DNA from: Utricularia gibba
Taxonomy: Eukaryota > Plantae > Magnoliophyta
Reading direction: 5' to 3'
NCBI GenBank assembly: GCA_002189035.1
Contig: NEEC01000002.1
Coordinates: 6,510,001 to 6,574,000, forward strand
Length of the DNA: 64,000 nt
Below are positions 8,419 through 55,600 of the stretch, piece by piece (the first letter of the stretch is position 1; the number at the start of each line of letters is the position of its first letter). The notes under the pieces are model-generated. The model ran no database searches, was not told where the DNA came from, and was given only the letters and a program-made list of their open reading frames with translations. Both the position numbers and the translations under genes were made by a program.

Positions 8419-10510
8419 TTAGGACAAGGCATCCTCAGTGCATGCTCCCCCAGGAGATGGAGACACAGAGTGGTCTCTTGATTCATCCTCGGCCACCGGC
8501 GACTGTTCCACTCCGACCTCCTCAATCATCCTCACAACTTCGCCCATCGTCGGCCGGTTTTCTGGGTTCGCCGCCACGCAGGCCATTGCAACGTGCAGCA
8601 TCGAGACGAGCTCTTCTTCGATGTTGGTGAACCGCAGCAGCTCTCGATCAAAGACCTCCCCTGTCCACTCATCCCTCACCATGGATCGCACCCAACCGGG
8701 TAGATCCTCATGTTCTGAGCAAGCTTTTCCGGTGAGGACTTCAAGCAACACTACACCGAAGCTGTAAACGTCTGCCCTTTGTGATAGCTTCTTGATCTCT
8801 GCCTGCTCTGGTGCTCTGTATCCCCTCAATCTTTCTATGGCGTGAGTGGGGTTGAGGAGGAGGGCGAGCCCGAAATCGGATATTCGAGCGGTACCGTTCT
8901 TGTCGAGGAGAATGTTGGAGGATTTCACGTTGCCGTGAGGGATTCCTGAGCCTGAATACTCCTGGTGGATCTTTGCTAGACCGCGGGATATGCCAAGAAT
9001 CATGCTGATTCTGGTTGTCCAGTCTAGTGGGATTCTTCCTGTTCCTCTGGAACCTGAATATATCAACAAAAACTGTTAAGTTTAGTTTTCATGTACAGGA
9101 TGTTGGTGTTTATTGGTTCCACTCACTTTGAAGAAGCGAATGCAAGCTTCCATTGGGGAGATAGTCGTAGATCAGCAGCTTTTCTTCTCTGGTGTAGTAA
9201 AAAGCTCTGAACTTGACAACATTCGGGTGCCTCAGGTTCCCGATGATTTCCATGTACTGTTCAAAGTCTTTTCTCGAACAGGGATTCGAATCTTTTAGCC
9301 GTTTCACCGCCACGGTATCGCCGTCGTGGAGGACTGCTCGGTACACCGTTCCTAAGCTTCCTTTTCCCAACATCTCAGCCGATGCACGGAGGAGATCCTC
9401 CAATTCAAATGCTGTTGTTCTGTCAAAGAACACGAGCTTCCCTTTCTCTGTTGCATTCGCCATTGGGACGTTCCCTGCCGCGGCGATAACCCGTCTTCCG
9501 CCGCCGGAGGAAGTGCTTCTCTTCCCGCTTTCAGTCTCCGCCACCGCTGAATTCGTGTCGCAGAACAATCTCCGGCAACAGCAAGTGAATGTGACAAACA
9601 CCAGAAGAAAAAGGAGAACAGAGTTCACCACAATGATAGTAACTACTACTCTGTTTCTTAGTTTTCTGTGATTGGTGTAAGGAGAGTGTTGAACTGGAGG
9701 GGGAGAAATAGAATTCGAGGATAGGGTTTCAGAGGATGCCGGCGCCGGCGCCGGCGTATTGTTCTTGAAAACAGAGCAACTGGGAAATGGGTTGTTTCCA
9801 CAGAGCCCTTTATTGCCGACAAAGCTACCTCTACCGTATCGGAAAATCAAGCGCCATGGAAGCGGCCCTGACAATTCATTGTTCGATAAGTTCAGATACC
9901 GAAGATGTGGAAGATACTCGATTGAGCTCGGAATGCCCCCTGAAATTTCATTGTTTTGCAATTGGAGAGTTATCAAGTTCTTCAGTGTAGCAATCTCCGT
10001 CGGAATCGGTCCCCGGAGATTGTTATTCGACAAATCAATAAGAAGCAGATGTTGCAGAGAGGATATCTCCGGCGGGACCTGCCCAGAGAAGTCGTTCCCA
10101 GAGAGATAAATGAGCTTCAGATTTAAGCAATTGATGATCGGAAAAAGGGTGCCGTTCAGACGATTGCCACGGAGATCAAGGAATCGGAGCTGGCTAAGAG
10201 AGGAGATAGCGCTGATTGGGCCGCGCAGGTTGAGCGCAGGGAGACTCAAACCAGTGACACGGCGGTTGGTACATTCCACCCCCACCCAATAAGCAGAGCA
10301 GGCGGCGGTAACCGCCGTCCAGTTGGAGGTGAGGACGCCGTGGGGGTCCGCCTGAGAACGGAAAAGAGAAAGGGCAGCGGTGTCATCAGCCTCGGAAAGT
10401 AAACGGCGGTGATTTATCAGAGGTGAAGTAACGAGGAACAAAAAGCACCTGAACCAGAAGCCTTCCATGACGAAGACCCCAAGCACATGAATATTTCTAA
10501 AGCCCTTCAT
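8419..10510 (-). CDS. LRR receptor-like kinase, LRR-III type (At1g68400-like); 2 exons (10510-9127, 9053-8419)
   Basis: LRRNT cysteine pair, LxLxxNxLxGxIP repeats, transmembrane helix, [43 protein letters not shown] and GYRAPE. Confidence 0.95.
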
Positions 10511-21278: not shown

Positions 21279-22968
21279 ATGATTCTTTCCAGAACCCCAA
21301 CCCAAATCCCACTCCTCAATCCCCTGGTACGCATGGCGGCATCTGATAACAAGAGAAGAAAAGAAGGAACATGGGTTCGCGACAAGTCAGCCGATGAAGT
21401 TCGGGTATCTCTTGTCCGAGCTCTTGTTGTCCAAACTTCGTTGCTGTCACAGCGCTGTAAGAAATCCTCTGTTGGTTATTAACATTCTGAGGTATAATGG
21501 ACTGATTTTTGATGAAATTGTGTTCTGATTATGCTGCTAGTTTTCACGGAGTTGGTTAATGAAACTGCGAAGTATGTGTTTCCCAATAGACGATTTGAGA
21601 CCAGGACTTTGGAGGAAGCTTTGATGTCTGGTACTTCCCTCTTTAGGTATTATGTTTATGTCGTCTAACTTCGTAGAAAATCTTACTTGGTTCTCGTGTT
21701 TTTGAAGTCCCGGATCTTGAAACCGTGGAGTTCAAGGTTCTCAGTAGGAAGGATGGCTATGAGATAAGAGAAGTTAAGGTACCCTCTTTTTTTGTCTACA
21801 ACTGAATCCGTAGTTTGTGTAACTTTTATACGTGCTTTGTGGGCATATTGGTTGGCTTGTATAGCCTTACGTTGTTGCTGAGACAACAATGCCTTCCGAG
21901 TATGGTTTTGACTTTGCTGGTGCATCTCAGTCGTTCAATGTTTTGGCTGGGTACTTGTTTGGTAAGGTAAATTGACTCAGATTATTCATGCCGAAAAACA
22001 CCTGCTGCTCTTTGCATAGTTGCAAGATAATGCCTCCTGGAATTGATCAGAATACTAGAGACGTGCAAATGGAGATGACAACTCCTGTTTTCACTCGTAG
22101 AGGTGAAGTTGAAGGGGAGAAGATGGACATGACAACACCTGTGATAACTAAAAAGGTCCCTCTTCTAGAGTGAGATGCTCTGTGGCCGTCTGAACGTTTT
22201 TAATTCAAGCCTCTTGTCATTTCCAAGTTATTGACCTTTTCAATGTGTGGAAATGCATGATTTCATTGTTGTGAGACATATTAGATACCGAACTTTTGAA
22301 AAAATACTACCTTAACATGAATTTTATCAGTAGAGTTGACATGACATTTTGAAAAAAATATAATTTTGTTTTTATGGCTGCATATTTCTGATAAGATTCA
22401 TATTCTTTTTAATTTAGGTAGATCAAGAAAAGTGGAAGATGTCTTTTGTGATGCCTTCAAAGTACGGTGCAGACTTACCATTACCTAAGGATTCATCGGT
22501 GACAATCAAGCAGGTGCCACAAAGGGTCATGGCAGTGGCTGTTTTTTCAGGTTAATGAAGATGAAATCTGAAATCACTTACCAAGGAGTGCAGGGAGAGT
22601 TTTTAGCTTTCCATGTTATTGTACAATCCGGTTATTGCTGTTGGACCCTTGATCTATTATTTTCTCACCTTTTTCTTTTCTCGTTTATTGTCAACCAGGA
22701 TTTGTCACCGATGAAGAAGTAAAGAACCGTGAATCAGCTCTACGTGACTTGATAAATGAGGACGTGGTATTCCGTGTTAAAGAGGGCGCCTCCTTGGAAG
22801 TTGCCCAGGTTTGTAACTTAAAGGAAGTTTGGAAAGATCATCATTTTTTGTATTCCTAACGGTCTTACTGGCGTTCACTTTATTTTGGATGCAGTATAAC
22901 CCCCCTTTACACTTCCATTCAGTCGGCGTAATGAAATTGCATTGGAAGTTGAAAGGAAGCAGGACTAG
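21279..22968 (+). CDS. SOUL heme-binding family protein, plastid type (At3g10130-like); 8 exons; apparent -1 frameshift in last exon near 22900
   Basis: [69 protein letters not shown], and YNPP[F][14 protein letters not shown] after a one-base correction. Confidence 0.92.
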
Positions 22969-35560: not shown

Positions 35561-37967
35561 TCAGTTCATCCTGCGAGGCTTCTGCATGCTCCATGCTTCA
35601 AGGGTCTCTATTGTGATGTCCTCAGTTCCATTATTGAATGCGTATAAATGTGCATCGCCATAGATTGCTAGTGTTGGATAAACTCTAGATGAGATGCAGG
35701 TTTTTCCTCCTGCCCCGAAACTCTCCACCACAGAGTTGTCAATCTGCCAACAAGAAAGGGAATGTAAGGTCTCATGCAGATACCTGTGTTAGCAGTGTTT
35801 GCATACCAAGCTCCTTAGGGAAATCTTATTGTCTATCAGATCGACATCCACAAATCCAGCAAATGAAGGCCTGTATGCCCCATCTTCTTTCTTTAAGCTG
35901 GACCTGCAAACCATGGTGGGAACACAGAGTCAGTCATGGAAGGAACAAAGCTATGAACTTGCGGTAGTTTCGAACATTGGTACCTTGATGCATCGGAGCA
36001 CATAAGAACTATATGTTTATTACCATCTCTGAAAATCCTAAAGAAAACGGGAGTGTATTCTTCCATATGTTTGGAAGCCAAGGTTATGATCCCGAATGGG
36101 CCTAATCCTCCCAAAACAGATGAGTTCTTCTGGCTGCATACCTTTTGCGCATCATACCTGCTCCAGTTTGTATTAAAAGGCTCTGATGTGTTCAAGCTTG
36201 GGAAGGAGAATGTCACTTCAACATCAGCTTGTGCAGGTGTTATTCCTTTGATTTCAACCTTGTCCCCCGTTCTGAGCGTCTGATTTTGCAGTGTCACCGT
36301 CGCACCTCTTAGAGATTCTACTTCTGTGACAGGCCACAGGAGGAGCTGCCTTCCGTTTGGATCGAGCACAACCGTGCGTGGGATAAGCTGCAGAGTCACA
36401 ATTAAGGAATCAGCATCCCTGAGACACAATTCATGAGCAGTGAGCATATACCTGAATTCCTGCCCAGCCCTTCTTAACATCATCTGCTCTGGAATCGGAT
36501 TCATTCGCCCAGCCCCACAAAATCCTCCTCCTCGTTTTGGCGTCGTAGAATGTTTTGGATGCATAAAAGTTCCCATAATCATACCTCAAACCATTCCATC
36601 CATCCACCATCCCTTTGTCAGGTGTAAAGGTATCACCATTCTCAGGCAAGTATGTCCCTATGGTGTAATACTCGTACCTGGTAGCATCAAGGCTTACTTT
36701 CAGGACGTGCTTGATACTCGGCCCTTGAGCAGAAGTATCCAACCCATTCTTCCCATTAACCAATACAGGATAGAAATCGGGACATTCAAAGTTTCCGGTC
36801 CCCGGCACGGTATGCAGCGGAGGCTCCTCCACCCAATTGATGAAATCCTTGCTCTTATACAAATACACTATCCCCGTGCTACCATTCCTGCCTCCTAAAG
36901 ACACCCTCCACTCCCCATCCTTCCCCTTCCAACCCGTCGTCGGATCACGGAAGGCGGTTTTGTTAATCGTGCCCAGCGGCACAATCAAAGGGTTGTTGTC
37001 CGGCTTGGTCCATCTCGCAAGAAACACATCGGATAAGTTCGCAGGAACGGCATAGTTTTGAACTTGCGTGTTGTTCTGATCAACTATTCCGGTGTAGAGT
37101 ATCACCGGCTTGTTCCCCGGCAGTATCGTGGCGGAACCCGACCAACACCCGTACTGATCGAACGGCTTCGAAGGCTGTATCGCGATCGGAAGCCTCCTCC
37201 AGTTGATCAAGTCCCTGGAGACGGAATGCGCCCACCGGATGTTCCCCCAGACGGCTCCGTTCGGGTTGTACTGGTAAAAAAGATGGTACACTCCGTTGTA
37301 GTACATTGGCCCTGTTAATTCCAGGAAAATTACATATTTTTTTAAAAATAAATATCTTAATATTCGAAAATACTGAAAACCGTACCGTTGGGATCTGATG
37401 TGTCGGCGTGGATCGATCCGCACCGTTCATCCATCACATGCAAAACAACCAATCAATAGGATCCCTTGGAATGATAACATAGCACGTGACACACATTCCC
37501 AAGTACCCAAGAATTATTACGGAAGGATAATTTCCATTACTATAAAATTAATTTAAATATTGAAACCAATTGGTAAGTAAATAAATAAATTAATTAATTA
37601 AGCAAGTATAGTATAGTATAGTGTGCGTCATGTACCATGCCACATCGTCTATAACTATATCCCATTGATCCCCATGCCACATGTCAGATTAGCCATCACA
37701 TGCATGATGGATGCATCATCTATATGATATATCCGTGTGTGCATAACAAAGTGAAATTACTTTTGAACCCTTCTCGCTCTGAAAGGATCCCGACAGAACA
37801 AACAACGCAGAGGAGTATAGTATGGTTGACTGACCGTTGATCCAGTTTCTCCGGGGCTGGAAATGGTACCCGGTTCGGAGGCTGTCGCCGGGTTTTGCAG
37901 CGGCGCCGGCGATGAAGACGGCGGCGAGGAGCAGGATCCATAAGGAAGCGGGGGTGGAGAGTTCCAT
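35561..37967 (-). CDS. CWINV: Cell-wall invertase (GH32 beta-fructofuranosidase); 6 exons including a 9-nt micro-exon
   Basis: Exons 37967-37835, 37394-37386, 37311-36452, 36387-35984, 35903-35807, 35743-35561. Signal peptide; WINDPNGP, RDP and FECPD (for WECPD) motifs; [13 protein letters not shown]. Confidence 0.96.
37386..37394 (-). other. 9-nt micro-exon ATCCCAACG supplying DPN of the NDPNG invertase motif
   Basis: CATCAG|ATCCCAACG|GTACG joins AAC G (exon 1) to GG CCA ATG (exon 3), giving N-D-P-N-G-P-M. Confidence 0.95.
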
Positions 37968-42284: not shown

Positions 42285-43615
42285 CTATGAATAGAGTTGC
42301 TTATTTTTACAGGGAGCAGCTTGATGATCATTTGTATTGTGAGGGATCAAAGAGATAAGCTTTTCAGGGAAACATGGCGAGGAGCTCCAAGCCTTGCCTG
42401 CAACTTGAAATATTTCCCACGATCTACTCTTCGTCTTCGATCCTGAATTCACCTGAAGAACGATCGACAATTTTGAAGCAACCCCGACTTGCAGCATTTC
42501 CTGGAGCACCCTTGGAGTTGCAGAGAACCTGGCGATGTTGTTTCGTAACTTTCAGACAATTGAGAACCCATAAACCAATTCAAAACGCAATGAAACCTGG
42601 AGATTGAGTGCAAAATCTTGACAGCCCTCTCGCTGGCGAAGGTTGAAACTCTAAGAATCTTCTTGGAGAGAGCGGCTAAACCGGCGGCATGGGCGAGAAG
42701 CTGGGCGCGTCCCTCGGCGCATTGGCAGAGCAAATCAAGTAGCATTAGAGTCATTTCATTGAGCCTTTTATCAGGGGAGTTGTTCAGGAGGAGTTCGATT
42801 AGAAGATGAACTGTTCCTGCTTCCACAGCTTTGATTCTGTTTCTTCCCCATGGACATGACATGATCAGAACTTGAAGAGCTGATTTGGATGCCCTTACCG
42901 AGACCTGGTCGTTCAGAACCCGAGCGAACTCGACGAAGAACCCGGGTTTTAATCCCGTTAAAACCTCTGGTTTGGGATCGTGTCGTTCGAGTATTTGATA
43001 CAGTAGAACGGTTGATCTTTCTCTTGATTCGGAGCTCCCGTTTTGCATTGAACTTGCAAGAGATGCTATGAATTCAGAGGTGTTCAGAGAAGCTAGCTCT
43101 GTTTCTGATAATTGACGGGAGAAGAGGATGCTCAACGCCTCTTCCCGGGCTTCCCTGGGTACATCTCTACCATGGTAGCTGATGAGGGAAGCCAGAAACT
43201 CCACGCCGCCGGCGGAGTCGATGACCCTTCGGTTGGACATACTGCAGGAGGAAGCGGATCTGATATTCTGCAGACACCTAATCTGCATCTCCGGCGACTT
43301 CTCCGATCGGATATTATTCGTAATCTCCGACTCGGTAACCACCGGCTTCGGCATAGCGAGGCCTCGGCCGCCATGCGCGGCGGCCCAGGACTGGATCAAA
43401 CGTCGGAGAGTGATGTTGGGAGTCAACTCCTGGTCGATGAGTGGCTGCTTCGTGACGGGGCAGGTGGCGGGGGTGGCGCCGGAAAAGAGCCACTTCTCGA
43501 TGGAGCCGCGGTCGTAGGTTATTCCGGTGGTGAGTGTGACGGGGTCCTCCATAATCTCAAGAGAAATGGGGCAGAGGAAGTAACGAGGGATCCCGGAATC
43601 CGAATCCTCCTCCAT
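42285..43615 (-). CDS. PUB: U-box E3 ubiquitin ligase, PUB22/23/24 type; exons 43615-42597 and 42528-42285 if the 68-nt insert is spliced
   Basis: U-box FLCPISLEIMEDPVTLTTGITYDRGSIEKW; CPWGRNRIKAVEAG; LCQCAEGRAQLLAH; after removing the insert, SRFSATPRVLQEMLQVGVASKL...WSSSPC matches the family C-terminus. Confidence 0.9.
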
Positions 43616-44147
43616 GGACGGTGCTTCCGGGGAACTGGCTCCTCCATTTTATACTTACGGGGGGCATCCGCCATGACTCCTTCTAAACTAGGGTGTAGGT
43701 AATGACAATATTTATTTATATTCATTTTTATTACATAAAATATTTTTAATAAAAACTTGCAGCAACAATAATATGAATAATGCCCACCATGTTTTAAAGA
43801 GTCAAATGAACATCGGAGGTCACAATTAATGTTGACTTTATTAGGAATATAGAAATATTTTAATCATATTTTATTTTTACAAAATATTAGTTAATTAATT
43901 TATATTAAATATGAGTAAATAATATTTTAAAAATAAAAAAGTTTCTATTAGTAACTAATGTAACAATTGTTTGAGGTACTTACAAATTTCAATAACGATC
44001 AAATAGAAAAAAAATCATTTAAAATTAAAAAATGGCACAATCAAATGAATATTTATTTGCTTGGGTGGGTTAATATGAGTGATACATTACAAGTCATCTT
44101 TTGCTTCTAAAAGAAGACCATTTCTCTTTGAATGTTTTTTTTGTATT

Positions 44148-44640
44148 ATAATACTATATATCAATTTATTGTTTTAATAAGCATTTTTTTAATTTGGATG
44201 AAGCTATGATAAATGATGAACAATGTTTTAACTCATCAAAAAAATCATGAACATCTTGCACAAATGGTTCATGATTTGAAATATTCAATCATGATTAAAT
44301 CATTCGTTTTTTTAACATAATACTATATAACACTTTATTGTTTTAATAAGTATTTTTAATTATGATAAAACTATGATAAATAGTGAGTAATATTTTAAAT
44401 CCTCAAAAAAATCATAAACATCTTGCGCAAATGGTGCATGATTTGAGATATTCAATTGTGGTTGAATAATTTGCTTTTTTAATATAATACTATATATCAG
44501 TTTATTGTTTTAATAAGTATTTTTTAATTATGATAAATAATGAGTAATATTTTAAAATTGTCCATAAATCATGAATAGCTTGTATGAATAATTCAAGATT
44601 TAGAAGGTTCAACCATGATTGAATCATTCGTTTTTTTAAA
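44148..44640. repeat. Three degenerate tandem copies of a ~168-bp AT-rich unit
   Basis: Anchor ATAATACTATATA at 44148, 44317 and 44484 (periods 169 and 167); each is followed by TTTATTGTTTTAATAAG and later by an AATCAT.AA block. Confidence 0.9.
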
Positions 44641-49429: not shown

Positions 49430-52141
49430 TCAAGCTCCTTGCTGAAGCTTCATTCTCCGTAAAGAAATGTAAGCTAGTAATCTGTAGAAGAGTGCCATTG
49501 CTGCAAGTGCTCCAACATCTGTATACCCACTTTCGATTTTGATCCCACCTACTGACTTCGTCAAATGCCCATACTGGATTTTTAGAAGTAGTTTGTAGGT
49601 ATGATAGTTGAAGGAGAGACACCGGATCCATGAGATGAACACTGGAATTTTCTGAAAGGATTTAGAACAATGATCATTTGGGGTATCCTGATTCAGATTT
49701 ACTGAATTGTTCAAGGAAGCATAAGCTCACCTCAACAAAGAAACCTCCAGCAAGCATGAAGGTCATGACTGTGACTGAGGCCAGAGTCGTCGCCTTCTTC
49801 AACTCCATGACTGTAGCACCAATAGCTAGCCCCAAGCCCTGTTAAGTTTTCACATGTTAGGTGGAAAGTCAAGTTTCAGACCCAAACCTCGTGAAGGATG
49901 AACCTGAGCAGCTATGATGCAGAGGAAAACCGTAAGCATGGTGAGGAAAAAGCACCCTGCTTTCAATCTCAAACCTGCCATGAAATAGACTACTAGAAGG
50001 AAAACTAGCGGCAACATTAGGTCTAGTGGTAGGTCACTTGAAGTTCTAGCTGCGAAATATGCACTTAATCTGTACATATCTGTTGCCCGTTCCTTGCACA
50101 GCATGGCTCTTTCTTGTGGGAATGTAAATATTGCTGTGAAGACTGGAAAGAATCCCCAGAATACTGCAATGAAGAAAAGCAATCCGGCCTGCAGTGGCTT
50201 CTTCTCTTTTAGCCTGGTTTTTGTCTGGAAATTACCATTGATGTGTTGAAAACTAACCTGATCTTGGAGTTTCTCAGGGTCATCACTACCGGATTGCCAC
50301 CATAACATTCCCAAGATCGCCGCGGTGGTAAGCACTTGGGTGGTTCGCAACCAGCTAAAGTAGTCGTGCCTTCGTTCTTTAAGTCCTCTACAGAATAGTA
50401 TGGAAAACTGCTCCAACCAGCTTGTTCCCCATTCTCTCTTTGTAGATTTTTCAATGGGTGTTGAGGCTAAATATCTCATGTTTTCACTTTCAGGAGTCCT
50501 TGTCCCGTAGGCCTCGACCAGATACTGCTTCAATCAAATATGTATGTATTCATGAGAAAAGCCTGCAGTTCTTCCCCACATTGTCTTATGCAATTACCTC
50601 GTGAATCAGAAGTGACACCGCAGGTTTATTTTCTGTAGCTTCTGATTCCCAATGCCCCATTTGAACCTTGTCTTCTAGCTCTGATGGCACAGAAATGTCT
50701 GTTAAGTTCCCATTAGCAAGATCAAGCATGAACTCTGCTGGATTCATTGAAATAAGAGGAGAACATCCTATGGATGAAAAGTACACCATTGCTTCGGCTG
50801 TCTTCCCATAATACAGTAAGTTCCCTTTTCCCAGAAGCACCAGCTTATCTAACATCAGAAAAAGGCGGCTGGAAGGTTGATGAATTGTAGTGATCACTGT
50901 CTTTCCGGCCTGCCGTTGTATCTTGCGTCAGCAAAATCTGGTGAACTGGTTCGAAAAAGGAACATCATTCTCACCTCAGCTATGCCGTGCAGTGTGTCTA
51001 CTATCTTCAAGGCTATGGTGGAATCCAGCCCTGAAGTTGGCTCATCCAGCAGCAACAGGGATGGGTTTATCAGTATCTCATTTCCTATGCACACCCGTTT
51101 CCTTTCCCCGCCGGAGACTCCCCGGACGAAGGCGCCGCCGATCAACGTGTCCTGGCACCTGCAAGAACACACACTCCTCTCTGTCATGCCCTGTCGTCTA
51201 CACACTACACAGGTTCCTTCTGCTTCCTTACTTCTCTAGTTCCAACTCATGTATGATGTCCATGGCTCGTTTATCCTTCTCCTCCTTGCTTAGCTTCGAC
51301 GGAAGACGCAGACGAGCTGCGTACTTGAGCGTCTCCTTCACCGTCAAGTGAGGGAACAGGACGTCATCCTGCGTGACGAATCCCACTCTGCAAAAGAAGC
51401 TTTCCCATGTCACCATTACTCGCAGTGAAACTCTCGATCAGGTTTCCGATTACTCGCCTGCGCTTCAGCGACTTGGAGTACGGCTCTCCGTTGTACGTTA
51501 TCGATCCGCCATTGACGGACTCTCGGATTCGTCCCCGAGTAGACTCAGAAGCGTCGTCTTTCCACACCCGGATGGCCCCATTATCGCCAGAAGTTCGCCC
51601 GGATCGACGGCGCCGGTGATGCCGTTCAAGATCTCCTTCTCCGCCCGTGATTTCACGCCGGTCCCCGTCACCTTGTATTTCACATCTCTGAACTGCTCCA
51701 TTCACCCACCGTAGTCAAGAATTCCGTTCACATCACCGGCAACAGATTCAAGCATACTAGAAACAACAAAAGCATTACCCTGAGGTGTATCGGCAAAGTT
51801 GGCTCAGTTTGAACCTTCTTCTTCAGATGGCCGGCTTCAACATCCTCCGCTCCCAAAACACCGTTCACAAGCCTGCTGGTTAATCCATTTATCCGGCGGG
51901 GGAAATGCCTGGGAGGGTCACAGATTTCATCATCCTCGCCGGGAGGCAAATACCGATCTCCGACGCCCTCGTCGTCGCCGGCTGGAACCGTGACCGAAAC
52001 AGAGAACCCGAGGCTGTCGCCGGAGGCCCGGCTCATGGCCCCGCCGCCATTCACCTCATCCACAGCGTACTTCCGCATCCGGTTCCCCGCCTCCACCAGC
52101 TGCTCGGGTTTCGACGCCTCCAGTCCTCTCGCCGTACTCAT
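49430..52141 (-). CDS. ABCG: ABC transporter G family half-transporter, ABCG22/WBC23-like; 9 exons; apparent -1 frameshift near 51535; GC-AG intron 2
   Basis: Walker [13 protein letters not shown]; [20 protein letters not shown]; signature [12 protein letters not shown]; Walker [14 protein letters not shown]; [11 protein letters not shown]; TM domain [27 protein letters not shown]...[13 protein letters not shown]. Confidence 0.94.
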
Positions 52142-52563
52142 CTTCCTGCGCGTGCATGAATTTAATGTGGAAGATTAACTTATTTTAGTAGTTAATTTAT
52201 TTAATTAACCTAAATAAATGGTAATTAAGAAGCCAGCGAAGTGATTATACCAACTTTAATCACTCTATGAAGAAAAAAAGCTGGTTACACTCTGAAATTT
52301 GGAACTCACACTGACCATCCGATGAGAGCATCTTCCCTTTAAATACACAACACGCAATTAAAGACTGGATGAGCCATGCCCACACTTTATTATTATTATT
52401 TCATTTTTATTGGTGTATTTCTATTTTTTGAATATTTTTATTTCCTTTTTTGGGAGACTTTTTTTTTTAAAAAAAATATCCTCAGATATCCACCTAATTT
52501 GTACTTGCAATAAGGTACTCACTACTTCCATAAGGCTGGTGTACGGTATACGGATGACGTAAT

Positions 52564-52602
52564 AATAGAAATACACCTAATTTTTATTGGTGTATTTCTA
52601 TT
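52564..52602. repeat. Perfect 14-bp inverted repeat (AATAGAAATACACC / GGTGTATTTCTATT) with 11-nt spacer; the right arm lies in a 33-bp direct repeat (about 52404-52436 and 52581-52613)
   Basis: Direct reading of the sequence. Confidence 0.85.
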
Positions 52603-55600
52603 TTTTGAATATTATTTTAATATGATTTCAAAGAGTATTTATTATTAATGGCCAACAAGATGCACCCAGAGCACTTTGTCTATTAATGGAAGGTTACGCC
52701 AAAATGGTGAAGGATTTAATTTTGTGAAAATAATTTTAGATAAATAATTCTAATAAAATAAAAATTATGAGTAAGTAACTTTTTGAAAACTAAAAATAAT
52801 TGTAAATTTATATTATTTTTTTCGTATGTTATGATAAAATTATTTATAAAGTATTTTTATATAAACATAAACTGTTTCAAAATAGTATTATAAATTATAA
52901 GATGTTTAGTTGGTATATTTAAATGAACTTAATATTACATTTTAATTCCATGTATATGGGTTTATTTAAAACTATGCATCTACCTTATCTTACTTAAAAT
53001 CACTTAATCCCATTTCTAATCTCAATAATTAAATAATATTTAAAAAATTAATCTTAACACATCAATTTTATTTAAATTCAAATAAACCAAACCCATTTTA
53101 TTTCATTCTCATCAAACAAACATTACCTTAGTGTAGGTATGCATCCCACAAACTAAATAAAAGGAGTTCCAAGATGCCAATCAAAATGACCATTTTCTTG
53201 GTTACACACTCCAAATAGAAGATAATGTCCTTATCCTATCAAACACCCTCATCGTTCTTACTATATTCGATCGAAATTCGTTTATTCGCCATAATCAAAG
53301 ACCTTGATGCGTTTTCATAAGCATGCGAATTAGGATCCAACCACATGGCACTTTTCTTTTCCTTTTCATGTAACGTGTCACATGGCATGTCAAGTGCCAA
53401 GGTCCGTAGACATCCAAATTGCAATGATGGAGATATCCAATGACATAATCAAAGAGTACAAGTGTAGATGATTTTTTTATGACAATAACGAGTGAAAATG
53501 TGGAATATGTTAGAAAACATAATTTCATATTGAAATTAAAAGTAAAATAATTAAATATATAAGAAATTATAAATTACAATTAATTGATTAAGTCTAATCT
53601 TTTATATTATAATCCATATTTTTTATATACTTGAGATTCACGTGTGTGTTCGCCTAATTTATAGTATCTTGAATTTCAATAGAATAGGATGAATAGATGT
53701 GCATGGTGTGGATTTAGGGTTCATCAACGATTTAAAACCCTAATCAATTTTCCATTCCACTGTCTACAAATCGAAATATTAATTATTTTTTTTGAAAGAT
53801 ATTCCAAAAAAACAACACACAATATAAAAAGAAAAAAGGGGAGTCAAAAGAGATGATGGGCGGCGAAAAGGTAGAATCCCACTACCAAAAGAGGCTCTCC
53901 CCATTCAACGTGAAGAGATTAGTGAGTCATGACAGCATCTTGTCTAATCCAATGCACGTTTGTCTTAGTGCACCTGCCTGCCTGCCTGCATGCATGCTTA
54001 TCTTTTCGTTCCTTGTTCTTTATTCTCTGTCTCGCGTTTTATTACACCCGCCCCATGCAACCTAGCGACCTTTGTTTTGTACGTCCGACGACAGGGTTGT
54101 AGTCTTCCCGCTATGATTGATAGAATATGGGAGAAAATGGAGCACTTGCCTGTTGATAATGGAGGGAAAAAGCTGCATTTACATTAGATTTTTTTATATA
54201 TTTATACACTTATTGGATCACTTCTATTTATTATACTAGTTAAATTTGTAAAACGATTAAGGAGGGCACTTTTGTCAACTGCATTTTTCTAGTCTTCTTT
54301 ACTAATCAATTGATTATTAATAATTTATAATATATCATATATTTAATTATATTATTTTAATTTTTTAATTTGATATTATTTTATCTACTACCTATCATTA
54401 AGTCAAACTTATCTGGGTTTGATTAAGATTTATTTTTTTTATTATGAGCGTAAGTATTGCTTGAATTATAGATCGATCTTTTATTGACTAAATGTATCCC
54501 ACTGTTTTTTTTTAACCAAAACTCACATCACTGCATGAAATCTAGTTTGGCTACTCAAACTTAGTCGTAAGTCAATCGTTTTGATATTATGTTGAAATTA
54601 AGGAAATCTATTGTATTTTTTTATCATATCAATGTAATTTTCTAATCTGAAATTGTTTCGACTATAATGTGGTGCACAGCTTTCGGACAACGACGACTGC
54701 CAACAAGGGTGTCGGATGATACAACGTAGTGGATTTGTGAGTAGTGTGTTGCTAAAGTGTAAAGAAACCCATCTTTCCATCGCGAGTGTTTGTTGAGTGG
54801 CGTCCACGGGTGATGATGACGCTCCAGTTCCAGATGGTTGAAATCTCGATGTGGGCGCTTACAGAATCCATTGTTCGAACCCGGCAAGGGACGAGGGTCA
54901 TCTCTGTCCAGTCTGAAGGCGATCCGGACACCAGATGATGGGAGGAGCAGGCTCTAAGGAAGAAAACAAGGCAGGCAGGCAGGCGCAGCAGTAAAAAGTT
55001 TACATGTAAAATCTGAGTAGTGTGAAAAAAGAAGAGCATGTAATAAAGGGAAAAGGAGCTCCTTATCCATCACTTTTGACACTTGAGTTCATGGTTGTAA
55101 CGTGTGTCGGTTATTCCAACTTGGGAATGCATGTAATGTTTATATGCAGTGTTTTGTATCAGAACAAATAATATTGCATGTAATAATTATGTATATAATA
55201 AATTTTAAATCAATAATAATCGATTGTATCTAATCTTTTTTTATTATAACATAGACACACAATAAACCCATAACTCAAATGCATGAAAAGTCAAGGTCCA
55301 TGAACTAGACCCGAGCCGTTTCCAGTTGGAATACAATAATGCCCGGATCCGAGGAGGAGGGCTGAGGGTACTCACTGACGCCGTACGCGTGTCCAGACGG
55401 GAGCCACGTGCGCATCCGGATGGTATACTTGTTAGGACATGGCGTACTCGTGTCCCATCGCACTCGCACTAGCCCCCATTTGCCATTTTTGCGACTCGTC
55501 AGCACATACACCAATTGGGGGAGACCAGGCACATGGTTTTTTTAAGTGTCAAAAGAGCAGAAAATTTTAGGGCACGATATCAGCTTTAAGATGAACAATG

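Follow-up and report, generated by a model that had tools for sequence, protein, structure and literature searches.

A putative lineage-specific intron, bounded by an AGGT-containing direct repeat, in a PUB22/23-class U-box gene of Utricularia gibba

Class III plant U-box (PUB) proteins of the Arabidopsis PUB22/PUB23/PUB24 type are regulators of stress and immunity, and the Arabidopsis PUB22/23/24 genes consist of a single exon. Intron gain is generally regarded as rare in land plants, and well-documented land-plant gains with a mechanism that can still be read are rare. In land plants, intron losses far outnumber gains (PMC4256211), and PUB genes are often intronless, as are 26 of the 74 in potato (PMC10759479). 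The neointrons of Daphnia pulex, which formed as staggered double-strand breaks were repaired (PMC4202315; see also the reviews PMC3443670 and PMC3020277), carry repeats of 4–12 bp at their exon/intron ends (PMC4202315). Duplication of an AGGT target is the published footprint of intron gain by insertion or break repair, and tandem exon duplication and transposon insertion are also published routes that give AGGT at both junctions (PMC3443670). For Utricularia, we found no published account of a gained nuclear intron. Here, we analysed a PUB gene of U. gibba that lies in a 64-kb stretch of genomic DNA (hereafter, the window) and is interrupted by 68 nt. With moderate confidence, we favour the reading that these 68 nt are a lineage-specific, U2-type GT–AG phase-2 spliceosomal intron that would have come from an insertion at an AGGT site; the gain is probably lineage-specific, and the splicing is putative.

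The predicted gene lies on the minus strand at 42285..43615, from its ATG (first base 43615) to its TAG (42287..42285), with the interruption included. Exon 1 (42597..43615) comprises 339 codons plus AG, the first two bases of a split Arg codon, and ends ...TCC AG. The insert (42529..42596, GTTTCA...CGCCAG) has GT..AG ends and is the candidate phase-2 intron. Exon 2 (42285..42528) starts G TTC TCT GCA, its first base completing the Arg codon, and continues with 80 further codons (FSATPRVLQEML...) and the TAG stop. Together, the two exons would give a coding sequence of 1263 nt, with 420 codons before the stop. In searches and alignments they were used separately, as two rows.

Pfam placed a U-box (PF04564, E=8.5e-22) at residues 9–81 of exon 1 and the ARM_PUB region (PF25598) in both exons, exon 1 giving E=5.9e-48 and exon 2 E=1.2e-08. 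The N-terminal U-box is followed by ARM sequence over the rest of the ~400–420-aa length, without other domains, and the homologs measure 400–425 aa. All U-box columns that are invariant in 15 homologs are present, and the best protein matches, from Sesamum, Paulownia, Rehmannia, and others, are named PUB22 or PUB23, at an identity of only 57–59%. A first, sequence-only reading of this DNA had called the gene PUB22/23-type, and both the domains and the names of the best matches bear this out: the gene is a predicted E3 ligase of the PUB22/23 class (class III, U-box/ARM). It resembles the Arabidopsis PUB22/PUB23/PUB24 type in having the U-box directly before the PUB ARM region and a length of about 420 aa, and differs from it in its long branch, a replaced Cys of the SWC motif, an extended C-terminus, and the 68-nt interruption. 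The Cys in question, nearly invariant in the motif that follows the U-box, is Ala here, and the C-terminus runs about 17 aa beyond the usual ...SYPS end of the homologs, so that the ancestral stop position is lost. A search of the window for PUB paralogs found none, and a collection of 5.8 billion proteins held no entry for the gene's own protein in either its spliced or its unspliced form.

The boundaries of the extra DNA are exact. At the junction, the homologs read ILHSIS[K/R]FSATP, and the sole alignment column covered by neither exon is the K/R, which corresponds to the split AG/G Arg codon (a slash within nucleotide sequence marks an exon/insert boundary). The Pfam matches agree: the match in exon 1 covers ARM_PUB profile positions 5–243 and ends at residue 338 of its 339, that in exon 2 covers 246–301, and the two profile positions absent between them are the last residue of exon 1 and the split codon. 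When exactly these 68 nt are excised, the reading frame is recovered and the protein again follows the family sequence, with neither gain nor loss of a residue; among the eight equivalent 68-nt deletions that the junction repeat (described below) allows, one alone has GT..AG ends. If the 68 nt are retained, the frame shifts, and the reading frame stops at 42449..42451 after 388 aa, of which 340 are native and 48 out of frame. The sequence-only reading had stated both that removal of a 68-nt GT..AG segment restores the ARM sequence and that read-through shifts the frame and loses the C-terminus; the former is upheld by the open reading frames, the continuity of the Pfam match, and the homolog alignment, and the latter by the stop at 42451..42449.

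We then compared the site with that in homologous genes, using 80 plant genomic loci of the PUB class from JGI metagenome contigs. The exon-1-like and exon-2-like parts were exactly 3 nt apart and in one frame in 71 of the 80 loci, and in six others, which are more distant, the frame likewise continues across the site (...ICKFSGTS...); the remaining three were cut by contig ends and were left out. The site is uninterrupted in all 77 informative loci, which collapse to ~25 distinct genes when grouped at 90% identity and to 13 groups at 70%, and all of which are at most 52% identical to the U. gibba gene. Annotated homologs of roughly 400–420 aa likewise align without a gap at this position. In a phylogenetic tree, the gene falls on the Lamiales side of a split (support 99/97) from 13 non-Lamiales sequences. 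Because the site is uninterrupted in 77/77 informative loci, the 68 nt are derived, as the earlier reading had expected from the single-exon PUB22/23/24 genes of Arabidopsis; judged by this comparison, they are an insertion in the U. gibba lineage.

Both junctions carry the same short direct repeat. An exact 7-nt copy of CCAGGTT occurs at 42600..42594 and at 42532..42526, with a spacing of 68 nt, and the similarity extends to ATC[T/G]CCAGGTT, identical at 10 of 11 positions. On the minus strand, the 5′ copy (42594..42604, ATCTCCAG/GTT) lies across the boundary between exon 1 and the insert, and the 3′ copy (42526..42536, ATCGCCAG/GTT) across that between the insert and exon 2. Five control introns from the same window, a small sample, had junction repeats of 1–4 nt versus 7 exact (10/11) at the insert. 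The sequence-only reading had noted CCAGGTT at both junctions, with ATC just upstream, and had taken the repeat as a signature of intron gain at an AG/GT site. The extended match confirms the former, and the latter agrees with published models in that the repeat contains AGGT (PMC3443670, PMC4202315).

The repeat taken alone is not rare. The window contains 15 AGGT-containing 7-mer repeats at spacings of 55–150 nt versus 12.4 ± 3.9 expected, several chance repeats of similar size lie within 350 nt of the junction repeat, and 26% of conserved Drosophila introns have junction repeats of at least 5 bp (PMC3443670). Its CAG/G part, moreover, is plain splice consensus. The repeat draws its weight only from coinciding with the boundaries that restore the frame: about seven of its positions are free of coding and splice constraint, six of these agree, and we estimate the chance of such agreement at a few in a thousand. 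Two further AGGT repeats in the window were considered as repeat-flanked introns and rejected. The one at 52581/52498 is an intergenic duplication; the surrounding segment, 52400–52640, is AT-rich, intergenic, and directly duplicated, and is situated upstream of a gene for an ABCG-type transporter, which is on the minus strand with its ATG near 52141. The one at 22141/22004 stems from a repeat internal to a protein encoded on the opposite strand. Here, small ORF pieces at 21988–22560 (plus strand) may, judged by eye, belong to a SOUL/heme-binding-like gene, and their 8-nt repeat at 137-nt spacing is due to the internal protein repeat (...TTPV...TTPV...).

To trace the origin of the inserted DNA, we compared its interior with 150–200 nt of each flank and with the whole gene, once with strict and once with lenient gap scoring, and the similarity was no better than that of shuffled sequences (p about 0.4–0.7). 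The sequence-only reading had proposed a search for a donor; carried out within the 64-kb window, it found none. With up to 3 mismatches allowed, the window contained no further copy, and the best local alignment elsewhere in the window scored 30 versus 26.2 ± 2.1 for shuffles, with 4 of 60 shuffles reaching 30. A search for inverted repeats in the insert, terminal ones included, found none, and neither Rfam nor a tRNA search gave a match, so a small-RNA or tRNA origin was set aside. Tandem exon duplication is not supported as a source, since the insert interior is unlike the flanking exons beyond shuffled controls, and a MITE, foldback element, or transposon is not supported by an insert that has no inverted repeats and no hairpin and is single-copy in the window. 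Because duplication and transposon are unsupported, unrelated filler DNA with a 7–11-nt AGGT target duplication is left as the probable origin.

These features place the insert near the Daphnia neointrons, which it resembles as short unrelated DNA in a once-continuous exon, without transposon features (PMC4202315; PMC3443670, PMC3020277). The Daphnia gains, in contrast, are polymorphic and dated and their splicing is confirmed, whereas the insert is known here from the sequence of one genome. It also fits the AGGT proto-splice-site models in having AG/GT at both junctions, ready-made splice sites, and exact excision; it departs from the transposon model in lacking terminal inverted repeats and extra copies in the window, and from the tandem-duplication model in that its interior is unlike the flanking exon (PMC3443670).

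To judge how intron-like the insert is, we mapped control introns by homology in two genes of the same window, both on the minus strand. An LRR receptor kinase gene (8419–10510) has a single intron in its kinase domain (9126..9054, 73 nt), the removal of which restores the protein sequence, and a cell-wall-invertase-type GH32 gene (35564–37966), which has the classic 9-nt DPN mini-exon (37394..37386), contributes four, at 37834..37395 (440 nt), 37385..37312 (74 nt), 36451..36388 (64 nt), and 35983..35904 (80 nt). An exon of this invertase has its best protein match in Genlisea aurea (78%), with other Lamiales at 73–75%. Since local introns measure 64–80 nt (64, 73, 74, and 80 nt in four of the controls), 68 nt is an ordinary intron length for the U. 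gibba genome. The A+T fraction of the insert is 0.62, versus 0.54–0.78 in the controls and 0.46 in the flanking exons, and its T fraction is 0.37 versus 0.29–0.43 in the controls. About 59% AU is the floor reported for dicot splicing (PMC2682935), and the insert lies just above it. Its RNA is less structured than that of shuffled sequences (fold z=+2.1).

The splice signals of the insert, on the other hand, are the weakest among the six introns compared. Its donor, CAG/GTTTCA, is good on the exon side, matches the consensus within the intron only at +1/+2, and is non-consensus from +3 to +6, and so ranks as the weakest among the six; the controls have GTGAGT, GTCAGT, GTACGG, GTATAT, and GTACCA, the last of which is also weak. 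The acceptor context is GCCAG/G. Of the 20 nt that precede the acceptor, 40% are pyrimidines, the lowest value, versus 55–65% in the five controls, so the earlier remark that the 3′ end lacks a strong pyrimidine tract holds against local introns. No YTNAY branch motif was found at −15 to −40 of the insert, the nearest sequence being CTGAA, with its A at −24. Young introns have been reported to have weak splice sites (PMC2809761), and weak signals are equally expected of a sequence that is no intron at all. With such signals, the splicing that we infer would probably be inefficient.

Whether the gene looks functional bears on this choice. At columns at least 90% conserved in 116 homologs, it keeps 118 of 138 in exon 1 and 22 of 30 in exon 2, compared with an average of 95–97% for the homologs themselves, and its protein ranks first in divergence at these columns among 117 sequences. 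Conservation is slightly lower in exon 2 than in exon 1, a difference without statistical significance (p=0.11; p=0.057 at an 80% threshold), and neither exon contains an internal stop or frameshift. The terminal branch of the gene in the tree is 1.07, versus a median of 0.21. The Utricularia lineage is known for a fast rate, and in a simple distance comparison the branch is 2.35 times the Lamiales mean for the PUB gene and 1.88 times for the neighbouring, functional GH32 invertase; because the rate excess of the PUB gene is largely common to the invertase, it appears to be mostly a lineage effect. Intact, conserved exons and a rate excess mostly common to GH32 rule out a long-dead pseudogene. 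The gene thus looks maintained, and if it is, the insert must be removed from its mRNA. A very young, unspliced insertion would give the same appearance.

Such an insertion is the alternative that we take most seriously. The 68 nt may have disabled a formerly intact single-exon gene without ever being spliced, leaving a 388-aa protein without the last ARM helices or a young pseudogene, and the GT..AG ends would then be incidental, due to an AGGT that the duplicated target contained by chance; we hold this to be possible, at a level that keeps it tentative. The observations that count against the intron reading speak for it, namely the weakest splice signals and poorest pyrimidine tract of the six introns, the tendency to lower conservation in exon 2 (p=0.057–0.11), the C-terminus that runs past the lost ancestral stop, and the divergence of the gene (first among 117 in divergence at conserved columns, on a branch of 1.07 versus a median of 0.21), while the near-intact 10/11 repeat would fit a young event that precedes decay. 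Against the intron reading, we also count that CAG/G is splice consensus, that repeats of this kind are locally common, and that 26% of the Drosophila introns have them too (PMC3443670). What argues for splicing is that, by our estimate, only ~1–2% of random 7-nt duplications would carry AGGT, an argument that is partly spent, since the site was originally picked for its GT..AG ends. In addition, stops and frameshifts are absent from both exons, which retain 73–86% of the conserved columns, the rate excess is mostly common to the functional GH32 neighbour, and the size, composition, and lack of structure of the insert match local introns.

The other explanations concern the age, the source, or the reality of the insert. 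An old PUB-class intron, retained here and lost independently in all other sampled genes, has a precedent in the grasses, where many apparent intron gains proved to be repeated losses (PMC4256211); it would require losses in each of ~25 distinct genes (13 groups at 70%) from different plants, and in all of the ~400–420-aa annotated homologs that are gapless at the site, and it would leave the well-preserved junction repeat unexpected, so we consider it extremely improbable. Tandem duplication of an AGGT-containing exon segment, or a MITE-like transposon, would be another origin of the same intron. Both are published routes to AGGT at both junctions (PMC3443670), but the interior is unlike the flanks under strict or lenient gap scoring (p about 0.4–0.7), and the insert shows no inverted repeats, hairpin, second copy in 64 kb, or Rfam or tRNA match; this origin is very unlikely. 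That the 68 nt are an artefact of assembly or sequencing is scarcely credible, since a non-repetitive 68-nt insert with an exact target duplication would be an atypical assembly error and the window contains no N bases.

Under the favoured reading of a gained intron, both the manner and the time of insertion are read back from the features described above. The intron would have arisen in Lentibulariaceae-type ancestry after the split from the other Lamiales sampled. About 57–61 nt of unrelated DNA would have been inserted at an AGGT proto-splice site, duplicating 7–11 nt of the target, as in the filling of a staggered break or in target-site duplication. Because the duplicated target contains AG/GT, donor and acceptor would have been present in the insert from the start, and its excision would rebuild the original codon exactly. 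The gene would then be a clean example of gain by break repair or insertion, in which a target duplication supplies both splice sites within an otherwise uninterrupted gene class. As a candidate effect, the weak splice signals could tie production of the ligase to splicing efficiency; that retention of the insert toggles a truncated ligase, as the sequence-only reading had suggested, is speculation.

On a wider scale, short introns may still be arising throughout the minute U. gibba genome, at AGGT sites that are duplicated during break repair or insertion, and the insert may be one of them, although we think this unlikely. If true, such a wave would be the first case of introns actively proliferating in a land plant, akin to the gains in Daphnia, and a shrinking plant genome would still be acquiring new introns.

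Several minor features surround the gene. A TATAAAA motif lies ~30–35 nt upstream of the PUB ATG on the minus strand, and out-of-frame upstream ATGs open a 68-aa ORF (43725..43519, minus strand) that overlaps the main start; their presence in the transcript would depend on the position of the transcription start. An AT-rich tandem array at 44148–44537 (period 167 nt, 2.3 copies, 86% matches) begins ~530 nt upstream of the start codon and may represent repeat DNA of the promoter region. The window as a whole is very gene-dense, with HD-Zip, LRR-RLK, DUF247, MYB-CC, PBD/RIC, GH32, CAF1, PUB, BTB, ABCG, and AHL/PCC genes, a density that fits a minute plant genome.
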